Shown one piece after another: positions 15,683 to 62,545 of a stretch of DNA of 64,000 bases. How positions within the stretch are numbered: position 1 is the first letter of the stretch; each line of letters starts with the position of its first letter. The DNA lies in the NCBI RefSeq assembly GCF_006345805.1, contig NC_042998.1:83576001-83640000 (forward strand), written 5' to 3'. The translations under genes were made by a program, and so were the position numbers. Below the pieces are notes generated by a model. That model had not been told where the DNA came from. It worked only from the letters and a program-made list of their open reading frames with translations, and made no database searches. The DNA comes from Octopus sinensis. Taxonomy: Eukaryota.

Positions 15683-18600
15683 TGTGGTATGAGGGCACTG
15701 TAATGCGGGGAACAAAATACGGTTCACCTACCTCTCGTTGTTGGTTGTCCGGCTCTGTTAAGTCTAAACACGTACCATTCCCATCTTACCTAACGTTAGC
15801 AGCTACTAGTACCAATCGCTCGCTCGTTCACCACCACTGCCCCAGGCCGAAAGAGTACGATCCTAGTCTTGTTCCCCTCACTTCATCTCTCGCCCTTCCT
15901 GTTCCGCTGGGGCTTCTCGGCCGTTGACGCTACAGCCCTTTCCTTCTGGTTCATCTCATCCCCACACACTGGCCTGATCTCAAAGATCACCTCTTCACTT
16001 CACTCCGTGTTGAGATCTGCTATCCACTCGGTTGGATGCCTCGCGCACTATGATCTCCGCAGGAATGGATCCTAGTTCTCTTCCCCTTCTCCACCTTCGT
16101 CGTCCGACGAAGCGACAATTCTGCGAACATCCAAGATGTGACGCGGCATTCCATCCACAGAAACGTTATTTTTGGAATTAACAGCCGTTACTGTTCCTCT
16201 GTTCTACTGAGATGTGCAGTGTATCTTCAGGGTCTTAACCCAGACTTCATCCCCTACCTACACTAAGATAGGCTCTCTCTCTCTCTCTCTCTCTCTCTCT
16301 CTCTCTCTCTCTCTCTCTCTTTCTCTCTCTCTCTCTCTCTCTCTCTCTCTCTCTCTCTCTCTCTCTCTTTCTCTCTCTCTTCCGCAGGGCATTTTGATGG
16401 TTTACTCAGATGCCACCATTCATATCTGAATATCACTCTGTGTGGAACGGACTCTTTGGCCTGTCCTGGTCGGAGCAACATATTGTACCAGAATACCACT
16501 TCTAGTGTCCCGTCTTCACCATGGTGCCTTTCCACGATATCATTTCCACTCGGCCTGCATGCTGCTCTGAAGAAGCGGTGCACATTCTACTTATCAAGCA
16601 TCTCTTTCAGTATCTTCGAACGAAATGCAGTGCCGTTGTCCATCAGCAATTCATCCACAGGGCCCCGCGCCACGAAATCTAATTCAGGATACGTGCAATC
16701 TCATCTGCAGTGCCTGTCTTCATTTCCATCCATATGGCCAATCGACCCGGTCCAGTCGATCATCGAGAGATACGTCCCCTGCCGGTAGTGTGTCACATCC
16801 ACTGCCAATCGTCTCCAGTTGTGCTCTACCGAGATGTTTCCCTGCTCGTGCACACCCGGAGCAGGGTCGATGGATTGACACCTATTATAGTTCCCGACCA
16901 CTTTTTGAATGTTCTGTCTAATAACGTAGGAGTCAACCCTTCTGGCAAGATACAGGGTTCTATCTACGCTCATATGATGCATGGCATGCACTCTCCTTAG
17001 TTCCGAGTCACTTAGCCGACACACTACAACTATCCCATTTCGAATCTCTCGGCTCCGCCAACCAGATATTTTTCACCCTGGTTGGAATATCTGCCTTGTT
17101 CCTTTCTGAAGGCATAAAGACTACGCTCAGCTTCAAACCAAATTCGGCAGCTAGCTCTCCTAGAACCCTAGGCGGCGCTTTACTAATCTCTCTGCATCCC
17201 CTTTGGTTCAAACCCTCTTTTCATCGGTGAACACGGTAGCCGAATCGGTTCGGATTTCGGTGGAATGCAGCCCCCATTTCAGGGCCAGATTCACTCCCTT
17301 CAGCACTCCGTCCAACTCAGCCACGTTGATATGGTTGTAATCATCTGCTTTTCGAAGCTACTTCGACGCCTCCGATTTCTAGAACAACCCCTATCGCTAT
17401 GCAGCTAGCTCCGCACCATACGGTCCCATTCTCCAGTTTGGGCACGTACCAGTTTCCTCTTACTGGGTTTTCTGATCTTGCCCTCTTTAGGATCTCCTGC
17501 ATCATCACCACCGTTTCCTCTCCCACTTTGTTCCGTCTGCTCGATGTTCGTAGCCACCCTACGATTGGATAGTGACCCACTGCTCTCCCACACATCGAGA
17601 ATAGTTCTCGCCTGTTGACGCTGGTACCCAGCTCCGGGATCTCATTCTCCCTCCGAAACACCAATACACCTGTTTTTTTTTTCTTCTTTGAAGCTTGAAC
17701 CTCAGTGCAGTTCTTCCACCCATTGGCTCCGGTTGCTTCGCAGTCAGCCCGAACTTCTTTAGATGATTTACAATCTCTGCGGCAGACACTACAGTCTCGT
17801 CTACCAAGATGTTGTATGTTGTCTATATAGGAATTGGTGGCCTTTTAAATCTTGTCCACCATCCCCAGGATAGATTTGAGCACTGTCACCATGATCTTTG
17901 GCGCAGAATTTAGCTCGTAATCCAGCCTAGTAAAACAGTATGTCTAGCCCTTGTATCGCACCACCCGAAAATCTTTGTCCTCGGTCGGTGGTGTAAGCCG
18001 CACAATCCCCCACGGAGCTCTTCCCCCTTTCATGTTGCAGACTCACAGAGCATGATGCCCCTGCACCACCAAACGAAACCACGTTTCCACTGACACTGAT
18101 ACCTCCAAGGCGGTTGATTGCGTTCACCACGTCAATTCCGTCTATCACATGGTCGATCACAATCGCCTGAAACCTCAGCGTTGTGCCCCGCACTGCTATC
18201 TCCACTTCACTGCTACCCTTACATCCAGTTTCGTTGCCGTCGACCGCCCGAACACTACTTGTCCGCCCCACTTTTTTTTGTTACCCTCGGGGTCACGAGA
18301 GACGTCATACAGTCCGTATCCACGAGGGCTTTGAACGCCTTTCCCCCAACCAAAACTTTAGTGGGGGAGGTTTCAGAAGCAGAAACTTTCTTGTGGCCTT
18401 TTCCTTGGCTGCAGTTTCGAGCGATATGCCCAGTCTGCCTGTACCGGTAGCAAACAGGTCCAGGCTTTGTCTCCTCGCAGTCCCTTGTCATGTGCGGTCC
18501 CTAACACTTGAAACACCGGCCCATGAACGGTCTCTATCGCTCCACGGCAGTTTTCTCTCCTCATTCTTTACTGATCGTCGCATTCCGTCGCAGGATTCCC

Positions 18601-19385
18601 CAACTGTCATTGCCAGTGCCTTCTGCCCGATGTTTTGAGTCGCCATTTGTCGTCGGGAAAACCATTTGCAAAAGCCAATCTTGCCACCTTCTCTAGGCCC
18701 TCTCCGGTAAAACCAGATAGCATGACCAGTCTCCGAACCTCTGCAGCATACTTTTCGTCTGTTCCCTGCGCACCTGACCGTTCCCAGCTTAACAAACGCG
18801 ACGTACATTCCTTCCGTATTGGCTTCTTTGAAGCACTGCTCGATCTTCGCCGAGTTCAGTTGGTCTTCCTCATCCACCTCGAAGTTCAGCGCCAACGCGC
18901 TTCCCTTCAGATACATGGCCATGAGACCTGCTACATCGCTGATGACTTGTAGTCTGGCCACCACCATGATCTTACGGATCCAGGCGATCACATCTCGTTT
19001 GCTACAGAAAGGTCTGACCGCATCGTTGCCGATTCTTATCTTCGCTGTCATCTCCTGGAAGAGGACAACAACAGAAAAATATATTCATATACGAGAGCCG
19101 AAATAGCTTGTGGTATGAGGGAACTGTACTGCGGGGATAGAATATGATTCACCTACCTCTCGTTGACAGCTGTCTAACTGTGTTAAGTTCAAACACGTGC
19201 TCTTCCCGTCTCACCTAGCGTTAGCAGCTGGTCCACTCGCGTCCGTTCACCACCTCTACCCCAACTCGAAATAGCACAACTCTAGTCTTGCTTCTTTCAC
19301 TTTCTCTCTCGCCCTTCCTGTTCCGGTGGAGCCCTTCGGCCGTTGACGTCACAGCCCTTTCCTTCCGCTTCATCTCATCCCCACA
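15683..19385 (-). mobile_element. Degenerate compact Gypsy-like LTR retrotransposon (element 1)
   Basis: LTRs 15683-15966 and 19109-19385 (TG...CA); TSD GACAC/GACAT splitting a SINE; gag 18488-19051, CCHC knuckle CYRYRQTGHIARNC, protease ALVDTDC, partial RT, RNase H, integrase LAVDVTHYRQGTYLSMID; many stops and frameshifts. Confidence 0.88.
19097..19108 (-). other. Primer-binding site of element 1, complementary to tRNA-Phe nt 1-12
   Basis: Plus strand GCCGAAATAGCT directly followed by LTR TGTGG; identical to the 5' end of metazoan tRNA-Phe(GAA) as recalled. Confidence 0.75.
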
Positions 19386-19975
19386 GACATCCTAAGCAAG
19401 TGTCTTCTTTAGTCCTGGGCCGACCATTGCTTTCTAAGGGAACTTGCTAGTGGAAACTGTTGCTGTTCTTGTGTTTACGTGTGGTGGTGGTGGTGGTGGT
19501 GGGGCTCTTTAACCTGTCTAAAATGTTATTAAATCTTTTTTTAATATAATCATTATTCTTGAGCGTTCAAATCACGCCGAGGTCAACATTGCTTTTCATC
19601 CTTTCGGGAACGACAAAATAAAGTACCACTCAATATTCGACTTGATGGTATTGACATAACCCTCCCCTCAAAATTGCTAGCCCAGTGCCAAAATTTGAAA
19701 CAATTATTATTATTATTATTATTATTATTATTATTATTATTGTTATTATTATTATTATTATTATTGTTATTATTATTTTATGTTTAACTTTCGCTTTACA
19801 TTTGTACAAGTTGGCTCCAAGTCTCACCCAGAGATTTCAAGAGACAAGTTAGACGTTGATGTTTGTGTTGTGCTTAGGGTGCCATATACTTGGTTTTGTA
19901 CATAGTGTTGTTCTAGAGAATGTTTAAGAAACCATAAGAAAATTATGTGTTTGTTTTAAAATTTGAGATTACATA

Positions 19976-61389: not shown

Positions 61390-61646
61390 AGCTACTTGCT
61401 GAACTAGTCACAATGCACTTCGCAATGTTTTAGCCTTCAAATGACGCCACCCCGCTGGCTAAGCGAGCAGGCCAACAGAAGAAAGAGTGAGAGAAAGTTG
61501 TGGCGAAAGAGTACAGCAGGGTCCGTCACCACCCCCTGCCGGAGCCTCGTGGAGCTTTTGGTTTTTTTCGATCAATAAACACTCACAACGCCCGGTTGGG
61601 AATAACCGCGAGTCCGCTGCCCTAACCACTGGGCCATTGCGCCTCC
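61390..61646 (-). mobile_element. tRNA-derived SINE (same family as 526-832)
   Basis: Reverse-complement match including gggccattgcgcctcc. Confidence 0.8.
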
Positions 61647-61740
61647 ACACACACACACACACACCACACACACACACACACACACACACACACACACATA
61701 TATATATATATATATATATATATATATATAAAACTTCCTT

Positions 61741-62545
61741 TGTCCATGATCCCTTAGGTGGCTTTTAAGTTCAGCATTAGATTGGCACGGTCTGCAGCAA
61801 ACGTGACAGAAAACATGTGCCCTCTATTGGATTTATTGGGTCAGCTTGTGGGCTGTCATCCTTATGTATCCTCATATCTCTTTTAAGACCAGGTATTAAT
61901 TTGCAAATCTTTTTGCACACTAAACTTGTTGTCTCACCCAGCATTAGAGGGATAACGCTGCATGTAGTTGGCTTGTTATGTGATTTTTAATGAGAGATGT
62001 ATCCAGATTTAGAGAGTAGTAAACGACCACACACGTCACAAATCCAGCTCACTATGTTCTTACTGATGTTCATACCGAGGCCTTTTCGAAGCTGGCGTTT
62101 CAATTTTTCATAATTGAGGCGTCTTTCTTCAAACATTCTGTAGCCTTCCTTTACGTATCCCCTCCATTTACTCCTCTTTAAAGCTAGCACTTCCCAGTCC
62201 TGATCTTTACGCTGAAGATCTTTAAGGTTGTTTTTTTATGCAATCTTTGTATCTTTTTCTTGGTTTGTGCATACATATGTACATGGTTGTCCACTCCTTA
62301 TGCAGAGTTTGACCACCTTCTGTACCTACACATTAGAACCATCAAAGCATCTGATGTGGCTTTTTAAACCAGATAATGTTTTGAAGAGACACCCACATAA
62401 ATTCCAAATCAGATTTGGACCAATAAGAGCTGCAGATAAGTTCTGATCTTTGTGGGTCTTAAAATGTTTTTTGAGGCCTCCGTTAGATTTGCAGACCTTC
62501 TGGCATACATTGCATTGAAAGGTTTTCACAGACATATTGACAGAA
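61741..62545 (-). mobile_element. RTE-type LINE C-terminal remnant with several C2H2 zinc fingers
   Basis: PRKRYKDC..DWEVLALKRSKWR..EG...FEERR; fingers CDVCGRLLLSKSGYISH*KSH, CHVCCRPCQSNAELKSHLRDH, CNVCQKVCKSNGGLKKHFKTH and two degenerate ones. Confidence 0.72.

Follow-up and report, generated by a model that had tools for sequence, protein, structure and literature searches.

What does it mean when the coding remnants of transposable elements (TEs) all lie on one strand over tens of kilobases? The question is raised by a 64,000-nucleotide stretch of the Octopus sinensis genome (contig NC_042998.1, positions 83,576,001 to 83,640,000; this whole stretch is called the window, and all coordinates below are within it), for which it had been predicted that 13 orientable coding TE remnants between 15.7 and 62.5 kb (the block) share the minus strand downstream of a candidate promoter and may form a uni-strand PIWI-interacting RNA (piRNA) cluster. 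Resolving the nesting and the breakpoints of these elements turns the 13 same-strand remnants into eight or nine independent events plus one inversion, and it is mainly in this methodological respect that the locus is of value at present. As to its nature, we give about an even chance to the block being an ordinary nested transposon island, built up by neutral accumulation in an unmethylated, apparently gene-free domain beside a CpG-depleted gene body.

To determine the strand of each remnant, every stop-to-stop open reading frame (ORF) of at least 60 amino acids (aa) on both strands of the window was scanned against Pfam, and the less clear parts (24.2-28.0, 33.8-34.9, and 39-62.6 kb) were rescanned at a threshold of at least 40 aa; this rescan took in all of the plus-strand ORF packs and, on the minus strand, 10 packs of 13, all but the three of 24.15-34.57 kb. 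Full three-frame translations of both strands were also scanned over 53.1-54.8 and 58.7-62.57 kb, and 309 TE proteins gathered from homology searches were compared with both strands by using tblastn. Between 1.9 and 62.5 kb, neither the Pfam scans nor tblastn with the 309 proteins recovered any TE domain or TE-protein match on the plus strand. Plus-strand tblastn matches were confined to 1121-1852 and 62559-62912, and Pfam placed a mariner transposase domain on the plus strand near 63.9 kb, so that plus-strand coding TEs are found at 1.1-1.9 kb and beyond 62.56 kb, much as had been predicted. On the minus strand, Pfam matches to reverse transcriptase (RT), protease, RNase H, and integrase were recovered in two long terminal repeat (LTR) elements (LTR1 and LTR2), two Ty3/Gypsy elements (Gypsy A and Gypsy B), and CR1, while tblastn matches lie at 24204-24867, 28838-32767, 33721-34538, 35340-36164, 36462-38959, 52934-53107, 54781-55904, and 58365-58634; the two LTR elements at 15.7-24.2 kb, placed on the minus strand by their Pfam matches, add to this list. 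The uniform strand of the coding remnants at 15.7-62.5 kb is thus borne out by both methods. The identities of LTR1, LTR2, Gypsy A, Gypsy B, the CR1 insert at 36.2 kb, the CR1 end at 53 kb, and the CR1 pieces at 55 and 58.4 kb are verified. The count of 13 is inflated: the CR1 pieces at 55 and 58.5 kb belong to one copy, the Penelope item is weak, and the RTE item was not upheld. Families of repeats resembling short interspersed nuclear elements (SINEs) occur within the block in both relative orientations, consistent with the earlier view that the SINEs are mixed; their orientation is given only relative to reference copies, and ARAGORN and Rfam scans for orienting them returned no matches. 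Annotated TEs and repeats make up 90% of 15.7-39.6 kb and 65% of the block, in which nesting reaches three levels, and in the density of this nest the block is like known uni-strand piRNA clusters.

Nested insertions and an inversion

The elements of the block and its surroundings are listed in Table 1. LTR1 and LTR2 are related, decayed LTR retroelements. The LTRs of the former (15683-15969 and 19109-19388) are 79% identical, have TG..CA ends, and are flanked by GACAC and GACAT. The LTRs of LTR2 are about 87% identical and are bounded by a 5-bp target site duplication (TSD), ACATA; this element lies in the 3' untranslated region (UTR) of a long interspersed nuclear element (LINE), and an uninterrupted paralogue of that LINE at another O. 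sinensis locus (L001) shows the empty site. The LINE comprises a C-terminal domain (24662-24228), a 3' UTR (24212-24227 and 19975-19782), and a (TAA)n tail (19781-19703). It aligns to the last ~140 aa of RVT_1 proteins of 1000-1200 aa (typically ~1100 aa), and eight scanned relatives have a central RVT_1 domain, mostly with zf-RVT, and lack the N-terminal apurinic-type endonuclease (Exo_endo_phos). The earlier call of an R4/Dong element is verified to this extent, and the features are those expected of the R4/Dong type, a predicted placement that reaches only to the level of the R2/R4/Dong group.

Table 1. Features of the window, in order of their starting positions
Feature	Coordinates	Strand	Evidence and remarks
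CpG-depleted domain outside the block	1-13500		CpG observed/expected; old SINE-like repeats and younger inserts
SINE, younger insert	523-785		Within the CpG-depleted domain
CR1 3' part, younger insert	1121-1861	+	tblastn (1121-1852)
Boundary zone: (TA)n(TG)n microsatellite (13.83-14.03 kb), then AT-rich sequence	13830-15682		CpG profile
LTR1, old decayed LTR retroelement	15683-19385	-	DUF7047 on minus strand; LTR pair
R4/Dong-like LINE, 3' part with C-terminal restriction-like endonuclease domain	19703-24867	-	Homology; interrupted by LTR2
LTR2, LTR retroelement with protease, RT, DUF7047, and integrase remnants	19976-24211	-	Pfam; LTR pair
Gypsy A, old Ty3/Gypsy element hosting the nest	27546-39582	-	Pfam, tblastn, LTR alignment
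CMC/Chapaev-like DNA transposon, internally deleted	27659-34752	-	Terminal inverted repeats, TSD; inside 3' LTR of Gypsy A
Gypsy B, young Ty3/Gypsy element	28043-33795	-	LTRs, TSD, pol ORF; nested in CMC transposon
CR1 3'-end fragment in integrase region of Gypsy A	36156-36514	-	DNA match; interrupts pol alignment
Gap without coding TE remnant	39583-52933		SINE-like repeats in both orientations; 22% annotated
CR1-like LINE C-terminal end, heavily 5' truncated	52934-53107	-	tblastn
Putative Penelope-like 3' fragment with weak GIY-YIG motif	54000-54277	-	GIY-YIG, E = 0.021
Segment inverted as one piece: CR1 5' part, mariner codons 1-27, SINE-like repeats, putative RTE-like tail	54782-62557	-	Junction alignments
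Unclassified ~2.4- to 2.5-kb element nested in CR1	55853-58350		Terminal direct repeats
Other side of the inversion, outside the block: 334-bp duplicate, CR1 3' part, rest of mariner ORF	62558-64000	+	Alignments

The deepest nest is hosted by Gypsy A, which has a 5' LTR at about 39411-39582 and a gag-pol region with stops from 39.2 to 35.3 kb. Its 3' LTR is split at a single point, 27546-27658 matching 39411-39548 and 34753-34789 matching 39546-39582. The transposon at this point has terminal inverted repeats (TIRs) CACAATGTAAC and CACAACGTAAC (CACAAYGTAAC), which begin with CAC, and a 3-bp TSD, TAA, that is seen as a duplication when compared with the intact 5' LTR of Gypsy A; by both TIRs and TSD, the insert fits the CACTA/Mirage/Chapaev (CMC) superfamily. 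What remains of its ORF covers aa 1-223 and 509-561 of the proteins of a 560-aa family; aa 224-508, including the catalytic core, are deleted. Pfam recognizes no domain in this family (P0121 and relatives). Because the element around the remnant has CAC.. TIRs and a 3-bp TSD, the family probably represents the transposase of CMC-type DNA transposons, and the earlier "Chapaev-like" item is verified in this sense. Members of the ~560-aa family (P0121-P0154) come from shrimp, crab, mantis shrimp, a sponge, fishes, and a parasitoid wasp.

Gypsy B sits, in turn, in the C-terminal coding part of the CMC transposon, where residues 509-542 of P0121 map to 33897-33796 and residues 540-561 map to 28047-27982. 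It has direct LTRs with TG..CA ends that are 99.3% identical over 584 aligned nucleotides, a short TSD (AGAC), a pol ORF (28835-32026) that is open for 1063 aa, and gag in two frames. The order of its domains (protease, RT, RNase H, and integrase, with RVT_1, RT_RNaseH, Integrase_H2C2, and rve following one another) and its closest relatives, which are Gypsy-type pol proteins, make it a Ty3/Gypsy element. With its near-identical LTRs, its TSD, and its open pol frame, Gypsy B looks to have been recently active. The best database match of pol is an O. sinensis protein (84% identity), and elsewhere in O. sinensis, at a nonorthologous site (L001 8944-14738, chromosome CM016859.1), the entire 5.8-kb element recurs with 96.7% identity. 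The gene LOC115218783 at L001 (protein P0001) is a 38.7-kb NCBI model stitched from TE pieces and is not orthologous to the window, and none of the proteins encoded by the window is itself in the protein collection searched. The CR1 fragment in the integrase region of Gypsy A is 93% identical at the DNA level, in reverse, to the plus-strand CR1 3' end at 63037-63392. The elements of the nest are separate insertion events of different ages, and the nesting is resolved to the base by the ACATA TSD and empty site of LTR2, the TAA TSD of the CMC transposon, and the AGAC TSD of Gypsy B.

The distal part of the block owes its orientation to an inversion. On the minus strand, the 5' part of a CR1 copy runs from 58634 to 54781, where it ends in ..ETVQRRSTKR; residues 263-352 of P0125 match 58634-58365 and residues 349-527 match 55856-55320, and the copy is split between ..SPGLDGV and LLKRGGYF by an unclassified element whose ends carry direct repeats of 64 nt (89% identical) and whose interior holds a 16-bp tandem repeat (57311-57471). 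Directly upstream of this CR1, and in the same reading frame, are codons 1-27 of a mariner transposase (MELSKRNIRAILLFNFKKGCKAAGTAR) at 58715-58635; in the Pfam scan, the mariner piece predicted here gave a weak HTH_48 match (E = 0.09), yet it fits the plus-strand mariner exactly. The complementary halves are found on the plus strand beyond the block: the CR1 3' part (62892-63392) opens with IPYIRHLPYFERL and extends as far as the 3' end of the element, after which, at about 63.40 kb, the mariner ORF continues directly at the next expected residues, IFKMFGEE.., so that the mariner halves meet at codons 27/28. When joined in silico, the CR1 halves are colinear and gap-free across the junction relative to two independent references, the CR1 at 1.2-1.86 kb and a full-length CR1-like protein. 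A 334-bp stretch at the right junction duplicates the CR1 RT region in inverted orientation (62558-62891 versus 55602-55269, 98.2% identical).

In the simplest history, a 5'-truncated CR1 would first have inserted at codon 27/28 of a plus-strand mariner, and 54782-62557 would later have been flipped, one of the breaks falling within the CR1 and the rejoining leaving a templated duplication at the junction; the duplicate suggests a replication-based or staggered-break repair event. Twin priming was considered as the origin of the CR1 arrangement and was rejected, as the 5' piece of the mariner was turned around along with that of the CR1. By the reconstructed junctions, the CR1 and the mariner entered in plus orientation, as did the RTE-like piece provided that it was present by then. 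Since this segment was inverted as a unit, any selection on insertion orientation has to explain only the eight or nine elements at 15.7-54.3 kb. The locus is, moreover, a clean and fully resolved octopus example of stepwise nesting combined with an inversion that carries a templated inverted duplication.

CpG boundary and signals for a plus-strand transcript

The left edge of the block is set off by its base composition. The observed/expected (o/e) ratio of CpG is 0.18 over 2.0-13.5 kb, with TpG/CpA ratios of 1.3-1.5; it jumps at the microsatellite to 1.18 for 14.04-15.68 kb and is 0.77-0.96 throughout the block, even in LTR1, the LTRs of which have diverged by 21%. In Octopus bimaculoides, DNA methylation is concentrated in gene bodies, those of ~14,000 genes with stable expression, and TEs and intergenic DNA lack it (PMC9476566). 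The CpG-depleted stretch at 2-13.5 kb most likely belongs to a germline-methylated gene body, and the step from 0.18 to the values of 0.77-1.18 from 14.04 kb on indicates that the block would be an unmethylated TE island outside the neighboring methylated unit. As old elements in it keep their CpG, the block presumably did not carry germline methylation of the gene-body type, and it does not share the epigenetic state of the flanking gene body. The sharp switch from CpG-depleted to CpG-normal sequence is like the mosaic gene-body methylation of O. bimaculoides (Macchi et al. 2022; PMC9476566), with the difference that methylation is read here from CpG decay, and in another species. The CpG-decay profile thereby provides a test, at no cost beyond the sequence, of whether the block is an intron of the neighboring gene: the step removes an intron of the methylated unit and leaves that of an unmethylated gene, which is weighed below. 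No exons were found in the left domain by Pfam on both strands or by ORF homology search, and the 48 most protein-like non-TE ORFs of 1-15.7, 39.6-52.9, and 58.9-61.45 kb (3.0 kaa) have no homologue at an E value of ≤1e-3, a search that noncoding or short exons would escape.

The candidate promoter was examined together with other signals that a long plus-strand transcript might leave. The promoter-like patch (14.83-14.95 kb) lies 0.8 kb inside the unmethylated side, and its distance of about 0.8 kb from the start of the block was given correctly (LTR1 begins at 15683). The CTCF-like motif reported there is present (ACACCAGGGGGCGCC at 14892-14906) and is the single match in the window, but the promoter signal does not rise above chance, as 16 of 100 shuffled sequences give at least one match. 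With a CpG o/e near 1 throughout the domain, there is no CpG island to be singled out as a candidate. Polyadenylation hexamers in the block are distributed almost evenly for AATAAA (37 on the plus strand versus 39 on the minus strand; 33 versus 24 for ATTAAA), and the symmetry of AATAAA gives no sign of selection for plus-strand read-through or of terminator depletion. Hexamers of 5' splice sites show no strand asymmetry, and strand-composition skews in the left domain and in the 39.6- to 52.9-kb gap are heterogeneous and driven by local repeats, with no consistent direction. Taken together, these proxies are neutral or slightly negative for a piRNA cluster, and they lend a plus-strand transcript no support.

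Explanations for the shared orientation

The probabilities that we attach in words to the readings below are judgements, not computations; for the piRNA cluster, the orientation run was given a likelihood ratio of about 50-100 on top of the low base rate of such clusters. For the ordinary island, the proposed course is that elements landed in or beside one another over a long period, first LTR1, Gypsy A, and the Dong-like LINE, then LTR2, the CMC transposon, and CR1, with Gypsy B as the youngest; the eight or nine independent insertions would happen to share an orientation, no dedicated function being involved, and one 7.8-kb inversion then flipped the CR1/mariner/RTE-like group and lengthened the run to 62.5 kb. 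The sequence itself demonstrates the anatomy, orientations, nesting order, inversion, and CpG boundary; that chance alone gave the elements their common strand is an inference. Nested islands of plant intergenic regions and animal heterochromatin are comparable in their stepwise nesting with intact TSDs, their mixed ages, and their lack of genes, and the block contains three such series (Gypsy A, CMC transposon, and Gypsy B; Dong-like LINE and LTR2; and mariner, CR1, and the unclassified element, each listed from host to insert). A single orientation is, however, unexpected in such islands, and here eight or nine independent insertions share one. The probability that all lie on the same strand is 0.008-0.004 for 8-9 independent insertions and 0.0005 for 12 present-day insertions. 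In an octopus genome that one report puts at about 2.7 Gb with about 66% repeats (PMC13282606), with several hundred thousand orientable fragments, we estimate from N × 2^-9 that hundreds of such runs would arise by chance. Several points weigh against neutral accumulation. This figure of hundreds is an extrapolation, not a measurement; 8-9 same-strand independent insertions, at a nominal P of 0.004-0.008, are unusual for one locus; a sharp domain boundary lies no more than 1.6 kb from the start of the run; and a plus-strand transcript is compatible with all of the sequence results. An orientation bias unrelated to transcription, arising from insertion or retention that depends on the direction of replication or from larger rearrangements that flipped several elements, strikes us as very improbable. 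One rearrangement of this kind, the 7.8-kb inversion, is demonstrably present, but the elements of 15.7-39.6 kb each have their own TSD or empty site with the nesting order intact, so no joint flip is needed there, and we know of no direction-dependent insertion bias for these families.

Two further explanations invoke a plus-strand transcript. The block might lie inside a transcription unit; this could be a tissue-specific gene that is unmethylated, the block forming part of a large intron, or else a long noncoding RNA. We regard this as unlikely though well worth keeping in view. Selection within such a unit might, with the same modest likelihood, have purged sense insertions of LTR elements and LINEs, which bring splice and polyadenylation signals, leaving the antisense ones, and tolerated short SINEs both ways. 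The uniformity of the long coding TEs beside mixed SINE-like repeats speaks for this, being the pattern of vertebrate introns, and the run starts just inside the domain boundary, where a first exon could sit; yet no coding exon was recovered on either strand of the window (Pfam; 48 best ORFs), the methylated state of the neighboring unit is not shared, the polyadenylation hexamers are symmetric, a functional gene would be an unusual place for an LTR nest of 24 kb that holds a young, near-intact Gypsy element, and the CR1/mariner group was originally in sense orientation. A flamenco-type uni-strand cluster, in which a plus-strand transcript from a promoter at ~14-15 kb would give rise to antisense piRNAs, appears improbable to us, and we are equally doubtful of its more specific form, in which 15.7-54.8 kb would be a flamenco-like cluster transcribed from the unmethylated edge of a methylated gene body and the distal 7.8 kb would have been recruited by the inversion. 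A piRNA cluster is defined by its small RNAs and precursor transcript, neither of which can be read from DNA. The resemblance to flamenco and other uni-strand clusters of Drosophila, mosquitoes, and other arthropods is nonetheless considerable: tens of kilobases of nested LTR, LINE, and DNA transposon fragments in one coding direction, a start near a possible promoter region, and a prominence of Gypsy-type elements. All coding TEs would be antisense to the proposed transcript, in a run of eight or nine independent insertions whose start coincides with the sharp CpG boundary (1.6 kb inside), and the nest is dense, three levels deep, and 90% TE over 15.7-39.6 kb, with a young Gypsy element in it. 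Unlike those clusters, the block is known from DNA alone, its promoter is putative with a motif within chance, its SINE-like repeats are mixed and unoriented, a 13-kb gap is free of coding TEs, and its last 7.8 kb was oriented by inversion, not by capture. Its old elements also show no CpG loss; a degree of loss might be expected had long-term germline transcription brought in gene-body methylation, though this argument is inferred and weak. Within the same phylum, the piRNA clusters predicted in Lymnaea stagnalis and Crassostrea gigas (proTRAC; Jehn et al. 2018) are about twofold enriched in TEs, and also enriched in low-divergence Gypsy elements and DNA transposons (PMC6128900), which the two Gypsy elements (one young) and the CMC transposon of the block match; those clusters were defined by mapped small RNAs, however, and most elements of the block are old. 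Moreover, since clusters cover only 0.27% of the L. stagnalis genome (PMC6128900), the prior for any given TE island is low. Piwi is present in octopus (PMC9115989). Cephalopod genomes are very rich in TEs; these are expressed in the brain and are not DNA-methylated, so that their silencing is an open question (PMC9476566). No cephalopod piRNA cluster map turned up in our literature search. If it were a uni-strand cluster, the block would be a first concrete candidate locus for cephalopods.

The gap and smaller features

The gap at 39.6-52.9 kb yielded no coding TE by Pfam at ≥40 aa on both strands. An interstitial array of (TTAGGG)n, about 20 units long and on the plus strand, lies at 40609-40734; if this array were the tail of a retroelement, that element would be plus oriented inside the block. 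Two ORFs beside it (39838-40425, minus strand, 196 aa; 40160-40609, plus strand, 149 aa) have no Pfam or database match. Near the right end of the gap lies a near-perfect, foldback-like inverted repeat (52316-52765) with arms at 52316-52540 and 52588-52765 that are 95% identical, followed immediately by a (TA)66 array (52765-52895).

The LINE end at 53 kb is 68-74% identical to the C termini of the CR1-like proteins P0155-P0159 and has (TA)n downstream on the minus strand. It does not supply the missing end of the CR1 at 55 kb, an idea that was considered and rejected since the 3' part of that copy lies at 62892-63392 on the plus strand. Two of the predicted elements fared less well. The Penelope item comes down to the weak GIY-YIG match, which is on the minus strand but was lost in the full-frame scan and has no homologues. 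The RTE element placed at 62 kb (61780-62571) was not upheld: the region has C2H2 finger matches only, with no detectable RT or endonuclease, and the tail (62571-61780) has no homologue in the protein database or among the collected proteins. The minus strand of 61575-62571 encodes a string of degenerate C2H2 zinc finger motifs 40-60 residues apart, after a ..DWEVLALKRSKWR.. motif, and could represent either a LINE tail or a decayed fragment of a zinc finger gene.

Two tandem arrays lie in the CpG-depleted domain to the left of the block. One is a tandem duplication at 2980-4717 with a period of ~800 bp (~2.2 copies, 98% identity). The other is a C-rich 39-bp repeat in six copies (8152-8396) with a CpG in each unit, which forms the only CpG-retaining patch of that domain.

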